NCBI GenBank assembly: GCA_038496445.1
Contig: JALMLS010000250.1
Location: 8,683 to 72,682, forward strand
DNA: 64,000 nucleotides
Reading direction: 5' to 3'
From: Trichosphaerium sp. ATCC 40318
Taxonomy: Eukaryota > Protista > Tubulinea
Shown: piece by piece, positions 14,886 through 51,939 of the stretch
Layout: each line of letters opens with the position of its first letter
Numbering within the stretch: position 1 is the first letter of the stretch
The notes under the pieces: generated by a model
Seen by the model: only the letters and a program-made list of their open reading frames with translations
The model's database searches: none
Told to the model about the DNA's origin: nothing
Position numbers and translations under genes: made by a program

Positions 14886-15548
14886 CTAAATTCAAATGTA
14901 ACAAAAAACACTACCAAACTTTTTATTCTTCCTTGAGTACAACAAAAATGGTTGGAGAATGGTTCTTTTACTGGCAGTGCAGCAACATACCAGGTCTACT
15001 AGTTACACCTTTCAGGGTGCCTAGCAGTCCACTTTATACCATTTTCTGTGGTACAAAGTTGGAGCGCTAGCATAGGCAGTGTATTACGTACACTAACGTT
15101 TAACGTTAAGAAACGTGTAACACATTATGGTACTAAAGTAACAATAATGCATCTACCATCTTGAGAGCTTTACAGACCCATCAAATGGCATTTATCCTAT
15201 CCAAGTAGTAATACCTAGGTAAGGATACCAGAACCCATCATCAATGACAATACCAACCACTAGTAACAAGGTGTAGAGTCGTTTTAGTATTGCAAAAAAT
15301 TGGCAATAAGAAAAAGTGGTAATAATGCTTTCTCTCAGAGAATCGTTTTGGATGGGCGTCTTAATTAAAACACGTTGAGGCCAGTTGATAACAAACTATT
15401 CGTTTATTTCCTTAGCGTTTACAAATAGAACGTCACGAATACGTACCAAATGAGGGTACCGTCGCGATACCTACCTCTCTAGGTATTAATGCTACGCAAA
15501 ATGTCGAGAATATCTTTGAATTACCAGTACCAAGCAATACTACTTACC

Positions 15549-16648
15549 ATGGGATCTTCAGAGCCTATTGATACCAGTGATGCTTTTTTAATACCTGAAA
15601 TGATGCTCGCAGTAATAGAGACTTGTGATTTTCCAACACAACTAATACTGCGTCTGGTAAGCGTCAAGACAAAAGTATTGGTAACAACGTCGCTTTCATT
15701 CAAAAAGGTAACAAAACTATTTTAAACAGCTCAAACCGCTGCGAATATCACTTAAACTGCGTAAAGGCAAGACGACAAGGCGCTAGACGCCTCAGAAAAG
15801 AGTACCTACTATTAGAGAAACAAAACGACGTCATACTCCATATCAACTTAATATCTCACACCAGAAAATGGGAAATAACATTTAAAGGACCGGTACTTAT
15901 GCAACCACGTGATAAGCCGTTTTTACTTACTTTGAAACAAGAAAGAATCACCTTATGTTGGAGGCTACTTTGTTGTCGAATTTAAGTTCCCAGTACGTCT
16001 CTTAACACGTGATAATGAATGTGTTGTAATCTTTTAAGGGTCTTCAACACCTTAAAGCAGTGTAAACACTTCTACTGTACCCAGTGATTACTTGCTTTAT
16101 CATTCAACCCAAAAGCAACTTTTTTTACCTTTTTTGAACAATTTGTACTTCAGCTAATTATAGCTCAGTATTAGCATCAAACAAAAGTTTTGTACTAACA
16201 AAATATAGAAAGGGTATCCTTTTAAACCTCCAGTGTGTACAATGAAAACAAAGACTTACCATCCTATGGTATGTTGATTTTTATATTATCCACAAAAAAA
16301 AAACCAAACCAACAGCATCACAACTTTTATGTTTGTGTTCAAACCTTCTATTGTAGGTGAGTGAACTAGGATACTTATCATTTAAATTAATTCATTATAA
16401 TTGGTCTCCTGCAGTTAAAGTTTCAAACGTAATTGAGTTTATTCTCACAGAAATGGCCAATCTTGATAGTGGTACTTTTTTGATAAAAGTTCATATCCCT
16501 CAAATTGTTCTGTACCCTAACACATTGCTCTATAGAAACAATTCTTAACGTAGAAGCACACCAGCTTCTGATATCGAACAGAGAACAGTTTAAGAGAAAG
16601 GCAGCTGATTGGACACTGCTGTATGCATCAACCCCACCTCCTGTGTAA
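15549..16648 (+). CDS. F-box-like + inactive ubiquitin-conjugating (UEV) fusion protein, paralog 1
   Basis: Exon 1 LIPEMMLAVIETCDFPTQLILRLVSVKTKVLV (F-box-like); then RRLRKEY...WEITFKGPKESPYVGGYFVVEFKFPKGYPFKPP...TKTYHPMVSELGYLSFKLIHYNWSP...NREQFKRKAADWT; Ser at the catalytic Cys position. Alternative start at 15489. Confidence 0.8.
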
Positions 16649-16922
16649 GCATACTTGCTGTTTTACCATTGGATAAGCAGCATTACCCTCAGGTTCTAGA
16701 ACTGTTCACCTTGTGATTATCATATTCAGTCTTACTTGTAAATACTGTATAATAATTCAATCCATTCAAAGGAGTTTTTACCAGTCGAAAAAGTGCAAAT
16801 GTACAACTATCAATTTTCTGTAAGCTTGAATGAGCAATAACTGTAATCACGACCGCAATGTAGCTTTCTAACTTCTCAAATATCAAGAGTTGGTTCGACA
16901 TACCTTTTAAACTAGAACACAC

Positions 16923-17408
16923 ATGAAAGTCCTTAAAGATATTTTAAAGACAAGACAGTACAAAGTCATGAATAATACAACAAAGCTTCGTGAAAATCAC
17001 TTCTCTATTTTATGTACGGGTGCCGTAAAATCAAAGCAACACTGTATAACAAATAATGATCTGAAAGCACTATAAGGCGTTGATAGCATTGACTTAAGTT
17101 ACACTTCAGTGTCTGATGAAGGCATCAAGGCTTTCAGGTGTTCAACGATCAATCTTAGTTCAACATCAGTTACAGATGAAGGAGTTAAGACAGTACAAAT
17201 TGACCTGAAAGCACTTCAAAAAGGCATCAAAGTGCTACAAGATGTTCGTAAGATTACTTTAACATCTACTACAAATGAAGCCATCTATGCACCAGCAGAA
17301 GAGCTATTTTCCATAGGTGTGACAGATATCGACTTGAAAGAATTATCATTTCTTATTAAATTCTTAAACAATGTGCACATCTTTGAACTACTCGCAATCA
17401 TGAGATAG
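16923..17408 (+). pseudogene. Intronless LRR gene remnant (ITDEGIKAL-type repeats)
   Basis: ITNNDLKAL*GVDSIDLSYTSVSDEGIKAF...INLSSTSVTDEGVK, with an in-frame TAA at 17073-17075; related to 25735-26115. Confidence 0.65.
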
Positions 17409-30902: not shown

Positions 30903-33900
30903 TTAATTAGGATTTCCCGCTCCTCTATGAAAGTGATACTTATTTTTATAAAAGTGATTAAAGTCAAGTCGAACAGTAAAATTAGCCAACTGGTAATCGT
31001 ATTCAGGCGAAGAGAACGTAGTGAGCGAAGCTACAAACAAAAAAATTAGCAAATTGTTGAAAAAGAAAAAAATCACGTGACAGTACTTATTAGGTTGCGT
31101 ATGTAGTAGTTGAAGAACTTTTCGAACTTCTGAACATTTCCAGCAAATTCTTTACCGAAACCCTTTTGAGCTTGTCGTTTAACGGCCTGAAAGAAAAGAA
31201 TAAGTGATACTAGTATTTTCTCATTTTTTTCTAATTATAAAGTTCTTTGACAAAGAAACCATAACAACGGACATGCTTAGAGCGGGCATACCTCGATACG
31301 TTGTTTCCTCCTTTGGTATCGCTGTTTGCTGTACTCCTTTGGATTAGTTTTTTTTGTTTTTAGAGGAGGTGCAGCGACATCTTTTGGAACAAGGGAGTTA
31401 ACACTACTCATTGTGAATTTTGCGAATCTGACGCAAATAGTAAGCAGCTTCTGAATTGCCTATGAACCACTAAGTATAATCTAACATATTAAGTATTCTC
31501 GTGTTACCGCAAATAGATTAGGCTCAGTTAACATGCACTGGCGAAGACAATTATCAAGGTAGGAATGATGAAGTCTAGCAACTTGTTCAACTGTTTCAGC
31601 CTGTAAAAAAGCAATGAGAATCTTGCGCAGTGTTTCGCGTAAGTTTTACCGTTTTGATATTTTTTACTAAATCAAGGTAGTAAGGTTCAATAACCTCCAC
31701 CATCATATAGTACTCAAGATTCTGTACGAAGTGAAGCATTTTTTGTCGTAAACTGAAGGATGGAGCCAACGCTTCTCGAACACAAAACTCTGTTGTAGTT
31801 TGATGAGAAATCCAAGTCTAAGTAAAATATTACTGTCAGCTATGTCCCCTTCAAACTTGGTGTATAACATTGTCCATACCTGCGCCAACAAGCGTTCAAC
31901 ATACTTGCAATAAAATAGATGTTTGAAAAGAAGTTGGTACTTAGTTAATGCCCTCTCACTTAAAATAAGCGATGAAGGCCACTCCACTTTGTAGTTTAAG
32001 GACATTGATAAAACACCTTCACAAAAACAGTTAACAGTTTGAGAAACAAGCAAGTTTTGGAGCGAATGTAATTCAAAGCGAACTGGAAAAAATGACAAAC
32101 TTACCTGTAAAGTCTGGGTCGCTTTTACCACGTGCAGGTGATGGCTGAACAGACCCTTCAGTTTGCTTGTAGCCCATCACTTGTGTTAAGAGCCTTGATA
32201 ATAATTCACTTAAATCTTCTGAAGATAACCTCACAGTAAGCTTGTCAGCAAAGGCATCATCCTACGATTAACATTAACAACAAAAAAGAAAAACGAACAA
32301 AAGCTTACAGTGAGTACAGATGAACGTGTTGATATCTCTAGCATTGTCTGTAGAGAATCAACATCAATATGAGATGGATGTTTAGATAATTCTGAGGCAC
32401 CAATCTCTAAAAAGTGAACAAACAAGTCACCTGTTTCCAAAAAAAAGCAACACTTCAATGACCTACGAAGAAGTAAACAAACAGCCATAATACATTCTTA
32501 AAATTATCAAAGGATGCGTACTTTAACAGTTTTACTAGTCTATATTTATCTATAATAAGCTTTAATAACTCCTGATTGGCATACTTATGCCCTTTATCAA
32601 TCTGTTCAAGATACCTTTGAAAAAAAAAAAGATTAGAAATACACTCTTCATTTTCTTTTAGATAGGTTGATTGGTATCTCATAAACAACGACATAAAACT
32701 GAAAAATACTGCTACGTACTCTCTTTCCAATGGTGAATATACAAAATTAAGAGTTGGTTGCTTGTCCATTGAAACACCACAATTCCGAATGACATTAATG
32801 TATTTTCCAGTAGACAAAATCTTATCGGTTCCTCTCTTCAAGAAAATAGGAACATTCTCTGCAAATATACTAAATCTACCATCAAGAGACCTAATAGAAA
32901 TATTACAACTCAAGCATATCAAAAAAAAACCTAAAGAGTGCAACGTACTTTAATTCACGTCTTTGATTTGAACCTGTGTCTCTTATCATAAATTCGCCAT
33001 AAGGATCGCTGAGAGATCCTTGCTGTACCCACTCTTGTAGCATATTTAAGTATGGTCTCGATGCCTTCTCAAGCAAGAAAGAGAGTAGTTTCTGTAGTAA
33101 TGTATCCCTTTTAAAAAAATATTAACTCGACATAAAGAAAAAACAATCTTTAAAAACTCACCCTGATACTCTTTGAGCTGCAAGGTATAGATGATTTAGA
33201 AGAGCGCCTCCTTTTAAAGATTTGTTCGTTTTAACAACAGCCTTTACGGCTTTCCATATACGCATCCAATCCTGTACGTAGCACCACATGCCCTGCCAAG
33301 AGTCAGAAAATTATCTTCTTTTTCCTTAAAACGCACATGAAGTGTCAACTCTAATTTATTATAAAGCGTCTCCAATTGGCCTACGCGTATAAGGTAGTCC
33401 TAAGCTTATGGTTAAAGCTTGAAGATGTGATTAAAAAATTCAATAACTAAAATACCTTTGCAAGCTCATCAATGGCAGCGCATAGCGCGTGAGATACCTA
33501 TGAAACTAGTTAAAAATTAAGTTTCAAACGGTACGCTCACAAAGCCGTATGAGAATTCTGATCGTTCCCGCGCGAAGTTAGCGACATACATGTAGTCTGA
33601 ACATAGTGGTAGTATAGCATCAATAAGACCATGCAATGAAACATCTGGTTTTTTTGGTTTAGCGCCATTTTTTACAGCTTCAGTACGCACGCAATGCTGT
33701 GTCTACCTCCCATTGAACTTCCTCTGTTTTTTTTGAACGTTTTACTTTGATGTATTCTCCTTCAATGCCCTACACGCATTAATAGGCGATATTAGGCGTA
33801 TAGCGTGCCATGAGAGCAAAAAGAAGCTCATCTAGAATGGCGCTTTCTTGAGCTTCGATTGGTTGTACGGAAAGTGGTACTCGCTCCGCGTAATGATTCT

Positions 33901-49224: not shown

Positions 49225-50843
49225 ATGTCTAAATACGCAGGTAAGAGGAAGGAAGTGAAGGAAATAAACGACTTACAACGATTAGAACACCATGAAGACC
49301 TAAAACTTGTTCAAAAGAAAGCAAAGCAGTTTGCTGATATGCTGCGAGCATCAAAACACTCGGTAGCGTACACAGGTACGCAAACAATATAATTTTGATC
49401 CATTTTTAACTTTTTTCCCTAGGAGCTGGTATTTCTACCTCCGCAAACGTCCCTGACTACAGAGGGCCTACAGGAATATGGACGCAAAAAGAACAAGGCA
49501 TAAAGCCCAAACTAGAAGGTTTTATGGACGAAGCTTGTCCTACATTCGGCCATATGGCACTTATGGAGATGCTGAAGCCGTAAGTATTAATTTTCGGAGA
49601 TTGCACCGCAGCGTCTTGGTTTTTTTTGACAAGTTTTAAAGGAATCACCTCAGCCATATTGTCTCGACAAATGTTGATTGTTTACATCTGAGAAGCGGTG
49701 CACCTAGATCTAAAGTATCTGAAATACATGGTAATGTATTCAAGTACGTACTTTTTAAAGACCTAAAGATAGTGAATTCGTACTAAGTGAACACTTAGGG
49801 AAGTGTGCGCTGATTGCGGAGCTGAATATTTCCGACACTTTGATGTCCTTGGACGTGTTAAAAATAGACAAACTGGAAGACTGTGTGAAAAACGTGGCTG
49901 TAAAGGTGTACTTAAGGATTGCATCATTAACTTCGGTGAAGTACGTATACGTATACTGCTAGAGCACGTTGAAGTCAAGTATTAACATGTATACCTTAGT
50001 TCCTAAGTTCAACTGAACATTCAAATGCAGTAAAAAACTCAAAAAAAGCTGACTTGGCAATTGTAATGGGCACAAGTATGCGTGTTTCATCAGCTGCAGA
50101 GTATCCTCTAGCGTAAGGACTTAAATTCATATCAAAAAAGTTACTTATTGATCGTGTTTAGCGTTGCAAAAAGAGGTGGACAACTTGTCATTATTAATCT
50201 TCAAAAAACTCCTTATGACAAGAAAGCAACACTTCGTGTTTGGGCAAAAACAGATGTATTCCTAGAGATGGTATCAAAAGAGCTTGGTATAGATGTACCA
50301 GCCTACGATATGTCGAAAGATCCAATATTGAGTGTTCCTAAAGAGACTAAAACGCTTAAAATTAAGAAACTATGGAAAGGAGTGACAAAAGAAGATGTCA
50401 AAGATACTTTTAGTAAACATGGCAAAGTCAAACATGTGTACTACTATGATAGCTATGCATACGTTGTATTTGATAAAGTAGAAAGTGCTGTAAGCGCACT
50501 GGCGTCAATCAATGAGGTACATACTCAGAAAAAAGCAAGAATCTCGCCAACGTCTTTTTTTTTTACTGCTTTTGGTTTTTAACCTCATTTTTTCTCTTAG
50601 GGTGCTGATAAGCTTAAAAATGTAGTTGCAGATTATGCATGTGGTATCGTGAATCCTGATTTTGAGCGAATGAAACAAACAGTATCAACTGTCAGTGGAA
50701 GTTCTATGGCTGATGATGAGCCGTAAGTTTTTACATGTTCTAAATATTTGTTCTTTTTCTAATTTAATCACCATAGACCTCCACCTGCACTTCTAGCTGA
50801 AGTATTGACAAAATTCAATAAAGTCCTGAAACCAGCAAATTGA
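49225..50843 (+). CDS. Class IV sirtuin (SIRT6/7-like) fused to a C-terminal RRM
   Basis: [34 protein letters not shown], Zn ligands [26 protein letters not shown]; [45 protein letters not shown]. Confidence 0.88.
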
Positions 50844-51002: not shown

Positions 51003-51939
51003 TTAACTTGGTGATGGTGGCATAGATGCATGTAACTTTGTCATCTCAGCTGCTTTTTTCATAAATCCTTCTCTATCTTCCTTCAACATTTTGTATACTT
51101 CTGAATTATTGTAGTACTCTACTGCAGTACTTGTTAGCCTAATGAACTTCAAGTATTGTTTCACGTGTTACCATCGTCAAAATTAGTTAGTAGTTCTCGT
51201 ATAGTTTTAACAACATCTACCATCCAAGACACCGGACTCCAATCCTGGTACAGCATCGCTAAATGTGTGCCTCCATGAGCAAACAACTGCGCCTGGTTAG
51301 CTGGAAGTATACGTTAACAAAAGGGGAGGTTACCATTGGATGTATTAGCTTAGTTTTGAATTTTACAAAGGGAGCCTTAAACGGGTAGTTGTCCTAAAAA
51401 CAGAATCATCATTTGCAGAAAATCCGTTGTCTTTTTGTCATTTTTGTCCTTGTGCGTACATTTAATCTAAATATGAGGGTGAAATATCCTTCCTCATATG
51501 GTGTATCTTTCTAGGAGCAGCTTCGTTAGCAAAATAGCTTTCTTTACTTATGTTATTGTAGTACAGGTCCAGGGAACGTTATTTCCCACGTTTTATCCCA
51601 TGTTTGTACGTTAACGTGTAGTTTAGGATCGGTTTGATCACATAACTTATCATACTCCATTTGCAGGCGTTTATTGTACGAAAATTTGCTTCTTATTAAC
51701 CCCTTGAGCGGTTTTATTCATTTTAAAGATAGTTTTATCAAAATAGCCTGCGATTTGCTTACTTTTCTATAAGAAGGCGTTCTCAATACCAGTTCTTTTG
51801 TTCCTACGCTTACTAAGCGTAATGTGAGTTGTGTGGTAAAATCGCATGAGCCAATAATGGCAAACATCATTTCAGGTATTATCAATGGCTCAAAGTCGCT
51901 CTCATAACATTTGTGCTCCATGTGAGAGTGTTTATTCAT
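51003..51939 (-). CDS. F-box-like + inactive ubiquitin-conjugating (UEV) fusion protein, paralog 2
   Basis: IIPEMMFAIIGSCDFTTQLTLRLVSVGTKELV; KRLQMEY...WEITFPGPKDTPYEEGYF..NYPFKAP..TKLIHPMAQLFAHGGTHLAMLYQDWSP...DREGFMKKAAEMT; His at the catalytic Cys position; intron positions match paralog 1. Confidence 0.8.

Follow-up and report, generated by a model that had tools for sequence, protein, structure and literature searches.

In a 64,000-nt stretch of the genome of Trichosphaerium sp. ATCC 40318 (the window; all positions count from its first letter) we find a six-exon gene, at 15549-16648 on the plus strand, whose 207-aa product carries an N-terminal module resembling an F-box directly ahead of an E2 (UBC) fold that has lost its catalytic cysteine. 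We propose, with a probability that we put at roughly 55%, that this protein is an SCF adaptor, with a divergent F-box that would sit on Skp1 and a dead E2 fold that would act as the recognition domain. The gene is transcribed and spliced, and a second, anciently diverged copy lies in the same window; the two are referred to here as paralogs 1 and 2.

Gene structure and transcription

The window has a G+C content of 37% and reads as AT-rich eukaryotic nuclear DNA with short GT-AG introns. Paralog 1 opens with an ATG at 15549 and closes with a TAA at 16646-16648, and its parts are listed in Table 1 together with those of paralog 2 and of two neighbouring genes. The transcript evidence comes from a public sequencing run, X1, which is stored as Logan contigs and recorded only as 'RNA?', a guess at its type. 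Over 15300-16900 it provides two contigs, 99-100% identical to the window, and because both are spliced at GT..AG introns the run has the character of a transcriptome, from this organism or from a near-identical strain. One contig reads 15591-15707 and then 15767-15892, skipping the 59-nt first intron, and the other reads 16365-16471 and then 16536-16641, skipping a 64-nt GT..AG intron. The joint between 15707 and 15767 is in frame, so the entire 53-aa N-terminal exon, including VSVKTKVLVTTSLSFKK, is spliced to the first UBC exon. The earlier note on this DNA had proposed RNA-seq as the means of confirming that exon 1 is joined to the UBC exons, and this joint confirms it; its description of an F-box-like motif ahead of a complete UBC fold after splicing is likewise upheld, by these contigs and by the exon-wise E2 matches given below.

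The joints between exons 2 and 3, 3 and 4, and 4 and 5 are predicted: their introns have GT-AG ends, the frame is kept, the exons align collinearly with E2s without gaps, and paralog 2 has its introns at the same positions. Other splice sites were considered and rejected: an end of exon 1 at the strong GTAAGC donor at 15657 is ruled out by the spliced contig, in which the exon continues to 15707; a last acceptor at 16553 is ruled out in the same way, as the intron ends at 16535 and ETILNV is thereby added to the protein; and an acceptor at 15729 breaks the reading frame. The open frame of the ATG at 15549 has two further in-frame ATGs upstream, at 15489 and 15501, so the protein may be 16-20 residues longer, and in paralog 2 another 6 aa could come from an ATG in frame at 51939; these possible N-terminal extensions are not conserved between the two copies.

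The ORFs neighbouring paralog 1 belong to ordinary housekeeping genes (a gamma-tubulin complex component, a kinase fragment and an RRM protein), and no functional cluster is evident among them. Just downstream, an ORF at 17109-17408 (+) contains a repeated S.TDEG[IV]K that resembles leucine-rich repeats of the RNI type; it has no Pfam match at E 0.01.

Table 1. Coordinates of paralog 1, paralog 2 and neighbouring genes within the window
Feature	Position	Strand	Description	Basis
Paralog 1 exon 1	15549..15707	+	53 aa; start codon, 13-aa variable tail, F-box-like module at about residues 14-51 (IPEMM...RLVSVKTKVLV)	ATG/ORF; spliced contig over 15591-15703/7, continuing at 15767
Paralog 1 intron 1	15708..15766	+	59 nt, GT..AG, phase 0	X1 contig joint, 113 + 130 letters flanking, 0 mismatches
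Paralog 1 exon 2	15767..15892	+	42 aa; UBC helix 1 and first strands (ARRQGARRLRKEY...WEITFKGP)	covered by the exon 1 spliced contig
Paralog 1 exon 3	15942..15992	+	17 aa; KESPYVGGYFVVEFKFP, UBC strands 3-4	predicted: GT-AG ends, frame, equal-sized paralog 2 exon
Paralog 1 exon 4	16209..16268	+	20 aa; KGYPFKPPVCTMKTKTYHPM, E3-contact loop YPFKPP, HPM replacing HPN	UQ_con and UBE2L3 matches
Paralog 1 exon 5	16357..16471	+	38 aa + 1 nt; contains active site (VSELGYLSFKLIHYNWSPA...), catalytic Cys replaced by Ser, WSPA loop kept	E2 alignment; RNA contig 16365-16470
Paralog 1 exon 6	16536..16648	+	37 aa + stop; C-terminal UBC helices, tail ASTPPPV	spliced contig acceptor; Ubc1 alignment
Gamma-tubulin complex component exons	31706-32943	-		Pfam GCP_N + GCP_C
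RRM protein	50148-50579	+		
Paralog 2	51921-51003	-	predicted, 215 aa	tblastn, sequence, gene model
Paralog 2 exons	51921-51763, 51702-51565, 51510-51460, 51393-51334, 51292-51172, 51121-51003	-		predicted

An E2 fold without the catalytic cysteine

The UBC part of paralog 1 (its C-terminal 150 residues) was compared with E2s exon by exon, as short pieces, and its exons match E2 enzymes in order and without gaps. Exon 4 matches Pfam UQ_con with E 5.7e-4 (profile 56-73) and, in the PDB, residues 61-77 of UBE2L3 with E 4.7e-4 as well as more than 100 other E2 chains; exon 5 aligns gap-free to UBE2D2 81-106 and to Ubc13 82-109, and exon 6 aligns to yeast Ubc1 124-149, all in the PDB. Exon 2 alone has neither a Pfam nor a PDB match, and its WEITF.GP is conserved in paralog 2. 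Judged by these alignments, the C-terminal part of paralog 1 is a complete core E2 fold, including the C-terminal helices. UQ_con is the sole E2-fold family in Pfam that any exon matched, and since only short exon pieces were scanned, the absence of a match to a UEV family is weak evidence; UEVs of the TSG101 type form a separate Pfam family.

The junction of exon 4, which ends at 16268, with exon 5, which begins at 16357, creates HPM followed by VSELGYLSFKLIHYNWSP. When GYLSFKLIHYNWSPAVKVSNVIEFI is aligned on UBE2D2 81-106 there are no gaps and a serine falls on position 85, so that the Ser of paralog 1 GYLSFKLI occupies the position of Cys85; the best-matching PDB chain, a UBE2D2, itself has a serine there (GSISLDIL). 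The earlier reading of this segment, in which a gap-free active-site alignment puts Ser in place of Cys and Met in place of the HPN Asn, is therefore borne out. In an active E2 the catalytic Cys stands eight residues ahead of the Trp of WSP, and HPN has its Asn. Paralog 1 has Ser and paralog 2 has His at the Cys position, and both have HPM; the Asp that follows the active site is also lost in paralog 1 (SFK). With the catalytic Cys and the HPN Asn both replaced, formation of a thioester is impossible. The elements through which E2s contact E3s, namely the basic helix 1, YPFKPP and WSPA, are kept in paralog 1.

The N-terminal module

We consider it likely, on the similarities described here, that the module in paralog 1 is an F-box. 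Among all 24,736 Pfam families, exon 1 of paralog 1, within which LIPEMMLAVIETCDFPTQLILRLVS represents residues 14-38, matches one only, the F-box family PF00646, at E 0.075. The match aligns residues 16-51 with positions 6-41 of the 43-position profile, in register with the [LI]P.E start, and scores 13.4 bits against a gathering cut-off of 20.5, which places it below threshold. In a language-model search of the ESM Atlas, the ten best named clusters are all F-box families for each of the paralogs, with a top score of 0.90, although with 118-134 shared features this value lies in a range that chance matches or distant relatives also reach. The IPEMM and LRLVSV stretches are invariant across both paralogs.

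Other tests of the module were blank or poor. Exon 1 of paralog 2 has no Pfam F-box match, and the second F-box family, PF12937, is not matched by exon 1. The tryptophan usually found in helix 3 of F-boxes is absent, as is any Trp in residues 1-53 of either paralog. Sequence searches of the PDB with exon 1, including one with a two-sequence profile, yielded no F-box chain but only chance matches or none. An AlphaFold2 model of exon 1 built on a two-sequence alignment has a pLDDT of 61.5 and two helices (16-25 and 28-50) rather than three, and a Foldseek search of the PDB with this low-confidence model returned nothing. No canonical F-box suitable for a comparison within the genome turned up when the window was scanned with a regular expression. 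The F-box assignment of the earlier note thus stands in part: the sole Pfam match and the F-box neighbours in the Atlas agree with it, but the score is sub-threshold, paralog 2 is without a match and the structural model is poor. The same holds for the Pfam comparison that it had suggested, in which UQ_con was matched by exon 4 of paralog 1 and by exons 4 and 5 of paralog 2, while PF00646 stayed below its cut-off and PF12937 gave no match.

A second copy under selection

A tblastn search of the window with the paralog 1 model found one further copy, on the minus strand about 35 kb away. All five introns of the two paralogs lie at the same alignment positions and in the same phases, the splicing of paralog 2 being predicted. 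The predicted intron 4 of paralog 2, at 51293-51333 (-), is 41 nt long (GTAACC...AACCAG), is shorter than all of the paralog 1 introns (49-216 nt) and belongs to the sole model that preserves the frame. In run X4, whose type is undeclared, 35% of the sampled words of paralog 2 are present. In paralog 2, UQ_con is matched by exon 4 at E 1.8e-4 (profile 56-73) and by exon 5 at E 0.045 (profile 78-110); in addition to its HPM and its His at the Cys position it has a 2-residue insertion in the active-site loop, and its loop-7 motif is changed to WSPVSW. After the last UBC helix both copies end in a conserved proline-rich tail, YASTPPPV at 16625-16645 and HASMPPSPS at 51006-51029, which could serve as a short linear motif or be phosphorylated.

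The two proteins are 41.5% identical overall, and this identity is unevenly distributed. It is about 8% in the first 13 residues (pS 0.66, pN 0.67), 74% in the F-box-like core, residues 15-45 (pS 0.74, pN 0.13), and 39% in the UBC part, residues 54-207 (pS 0.72, pN 0.42). Synonymous differences are saturated, which means that the duplication is old and that the likeness of the copies does not stem from recent gene conversion. Purifying selection acts on both copies, and it is tightest on the N-terminal module. A conserved docking module combined with a diverging recognition module is the pattern expected of F-box families.

Relatives and precedents

Relatives elsewhere were sought with a two-sequence profile of exon 1 of the paralogs, that is, of the N-terminal module. 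Against 1.84 billion representative proteins the profile found no true relative; two matches near E 7e-4, to an ankyrin-repeat protein and to a repeat protein, are spurious and arise through repeated short stretches. There was no self-match in this library, from which the organism must be absent, and the null result therefore extends only to close relatives of the module in the organisms sampled. A word-indexed protein collection gave no candidate, and none of the pattern matches was confirmed among the 378 in JGI metagenome contigs or the 96 in IMG/VR viral contigs. By these searches the amoeba version looks lineage-restricted.

The earlier note knew of no characterised family that combines an F-box with a UEV, but there is one: Morgue of Drosophila (CG15437) consists of a zinc finger, an F-box and a UEV in which the active-site Cys is changed to Gly (PMC3787007). 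As the layout had already been described, which the earlier note itself had named as grounds for refuting it, the claim to novelty is weakened; a literature search for further fusions of an F-box with an E2 or UEV found nothing beyond Morgue. The F-box of Morgue mediates its binding to SkpA, and the protein also associates with polyubiquitin linked through K48; its reported occurrence is confined to a limited set of protostomes, in Lophotrochozoa, Platyzoa and Ecdysozoa (PMC3787007). The family is recognised by a C4 zinc finger of the pattern CX2CX12CX2C at the N-terminus, by five Trp that are conserved in the F-box, and by a Gly that does not vary at the position of the active-site Cys (PMC3787007). 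If the N-terminus of the amoeba proteins is accepted as an F-box, they have the same order of domains as Morgue, an F-box and then a Cys-less E2 fold. They differ in every Morgue-specific feature that was compared. With 207-215 aa they are less than half the size of that much larger protein, in which the active-site residue is Gly421; the zinc finger is missing, the first 53 residues having one Cys in paralog 1 and two in paralog 2 and no CX2C; residues 1-53 have no Trp where the Morgue F-box has five that are conserved; and the active-site position has Ser or His in place of Gly. Since none of these Morgue-specific features is shared and the UBC part is closely similar to core class-I E2s, an independent origin is the likelier one, and the amoeba layout is probably separate in origin from Morgue, which was compared here by its published description.

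The resemblance to core class-I E2s (UBE2D/UbcH5, UBE2L3/UbcH7, UBE2E, Ubc13 and Ubc1) is that of a gap-free, collinear UBC core, and paralog 1 shares with them YPFKPP, HP-, WSPA and the two C-terminal helices; the paralogs differ from them by the additional N-terminal module and by the replacement of the catalytic Cys and the HPN Asn. The UEVs Mms2/Uev1a and TSG101/Vps23, whose role is to bind ubiquitin or peptides non-covalently, have an E2 fold without an active-site Cys, as do the amoeba proteins. To our knowledge neither the C-terminal helices nor the HP(N) motif is present in these UEVs, whereas the amoeba proteins have kept the E2 core complete, with HPM. Canonical F-box proteins (Skp2, Fbxw7, FBXL/FBXO) have a similar N-terminal module of about 40 residues, with an [LI]P.E start and hydrophobic periodicity, followed by a variable C-terminal domain; against these, the amoeba module scores sub-threshold and is missing the helix-3 Trp, and it is followed by an E2 fold instead of WD40 or LRR domains.

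A hypothetical mechanism and its alternatives

In the mechanism that we put forward, the divergent N-terminal F-box would dock on Skp1 and thereby on Cul1-Rbx1, and the dead E2 fold would sit where other F-box proteins have their substrate-binding domain. By analogy with Morgue and with UEVs of the Mms2 type, this fold would most likely bind ubiquitin or polyubiquitin non-covalently. The ligand might instead be a RING, U-box or HECT domain, because paralog 1 keeps the YPF and WSPA loops for E3 contact; the earlier note had suggested RING ligases, possibly of pathogens, among the conceivable targets. In either case the complex would act on proteins that are already ubiquitinated or on other ligases. 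Of the SCF-adaptor interpretation given in the earlier note, the architecture is real and expressed and the interpretation is the best available, but its evidence for an F-box is sub-threshold. The precedent does not settle the matter: the F-box of Morgue is dispensable for its over-expression phenotypes (PMC3787007), so that Morgue is no proof of an SCF function.

Every sequence or structure test for an F-box was blank or below threshold, and this is what gives weight to a different view, in which the helical extension at the N-terminus is no F-box and the protein is an E2 variant that stands alone. Its place would then be outside SCF, where it would serve an active E2 or an E3 as cofactor or inhibitor, in the way that Mms2/Uev1 acts with Ubc13 or AKTIP/FTS acts in the Hook complex, with the conserved N-terminus on another partner. 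Lineage-specific N-terminal extensions are indeed common in E2s and UEVs, as a matter of general knowledge. On the other hand, the sole Pfam match of paralog 1 and the nearest named Atlas clusters of both paralogs are F-box families, the F-box profile is matched in register including its [LI]P.E start, and the module is the part of the protein that tolerates least change, all of which makes this view rather unlikely in our estimation. The retained E3-contact elements of paralog 1 (basic helix 1, YPFKPP and WSPA) could also serve a decoy or inhibitor of SCF, with the F-box on Skp1-Cul1 and the dead E2 on the E2-binding face of Rbx1, where it would block E2s or hold the SCF inactive. A linker of only a few residues separates the F-box-like module from UBC helix 1. 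The shortness of this linker counts in favour of a decoy, yet, to infer from published SCF structures, it also makes a reach from Skp1 to Rbx1 across the cullin geometrically unlikely, and the WSPVSW of paralog 2 together with a UBC identity of 39% fits diverging ligands better than a single fixed partner; we regard such a decoy as improbable.

Another possibility takes the serine of paralog 1 at face value, as a nucleophile that E1 would load with ubiquitin to form a stable oxyester, giving an F-box protein that carries ubiquitin permanently. Engineered Cys-to-Ser E2s serve to trap a stable ubiquitin ester, the serine coincides precisely with Cys85 in the alignment, and a UBE2D2 chain that itself has Ser there is the top PDB match. 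We nevertheless consider this very improbable, given that the HPN Asn and the Asp after the active site are lost as well (HPM, SFK) and that the nucleophile differs between the paralogs; as paralog 2 has His and not Ser, it is not conserved in the family. Finally, the copies might be functionless, decaying duplicates of an ordinary E2 gene, as the lost catalytic residues and the failure to find relatives in any collection searched might suggest. To this we give almost no credence: frames and splice sites are intact in both copies although synonymous sites are saturated, pN is much lower than pS, spliced transcripts of paralog 1 exist, and purifying selection on both copies counts against a pseudogene.

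Implications

What a protein of the F-box-UEV layout does has yet to be worked out even for Morgue, and the layout was thought to be limited to some invertebrates. Were the N-terminus of the amoeba proteins not an F-box, they would be merely a lineage-specific UEV, of modest interest. If it is one, as the SCF-adaptor reading holds, then the amoeba version is much smaller and free of a zinc finger, it exists in two ancient copies, and its docking module is under the tightest constraint. It is conceivable, at somewhat less than even odds, that the amoeba lineage independently evolved SCF receptors with a dead-E2 recognition domain, convergent with Morgue, and that the paralogs now have different ligands. 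If true, this would point to a design reached more than once, with an E2 mimic through which SCF ligases recognise ubiquitin chains or bind other E3s. The amoeba proteins would offer a minimal system for the role of a dead E2 fold on an SCF ligase, and they would show that the F-box-UEV layout arose more than once.
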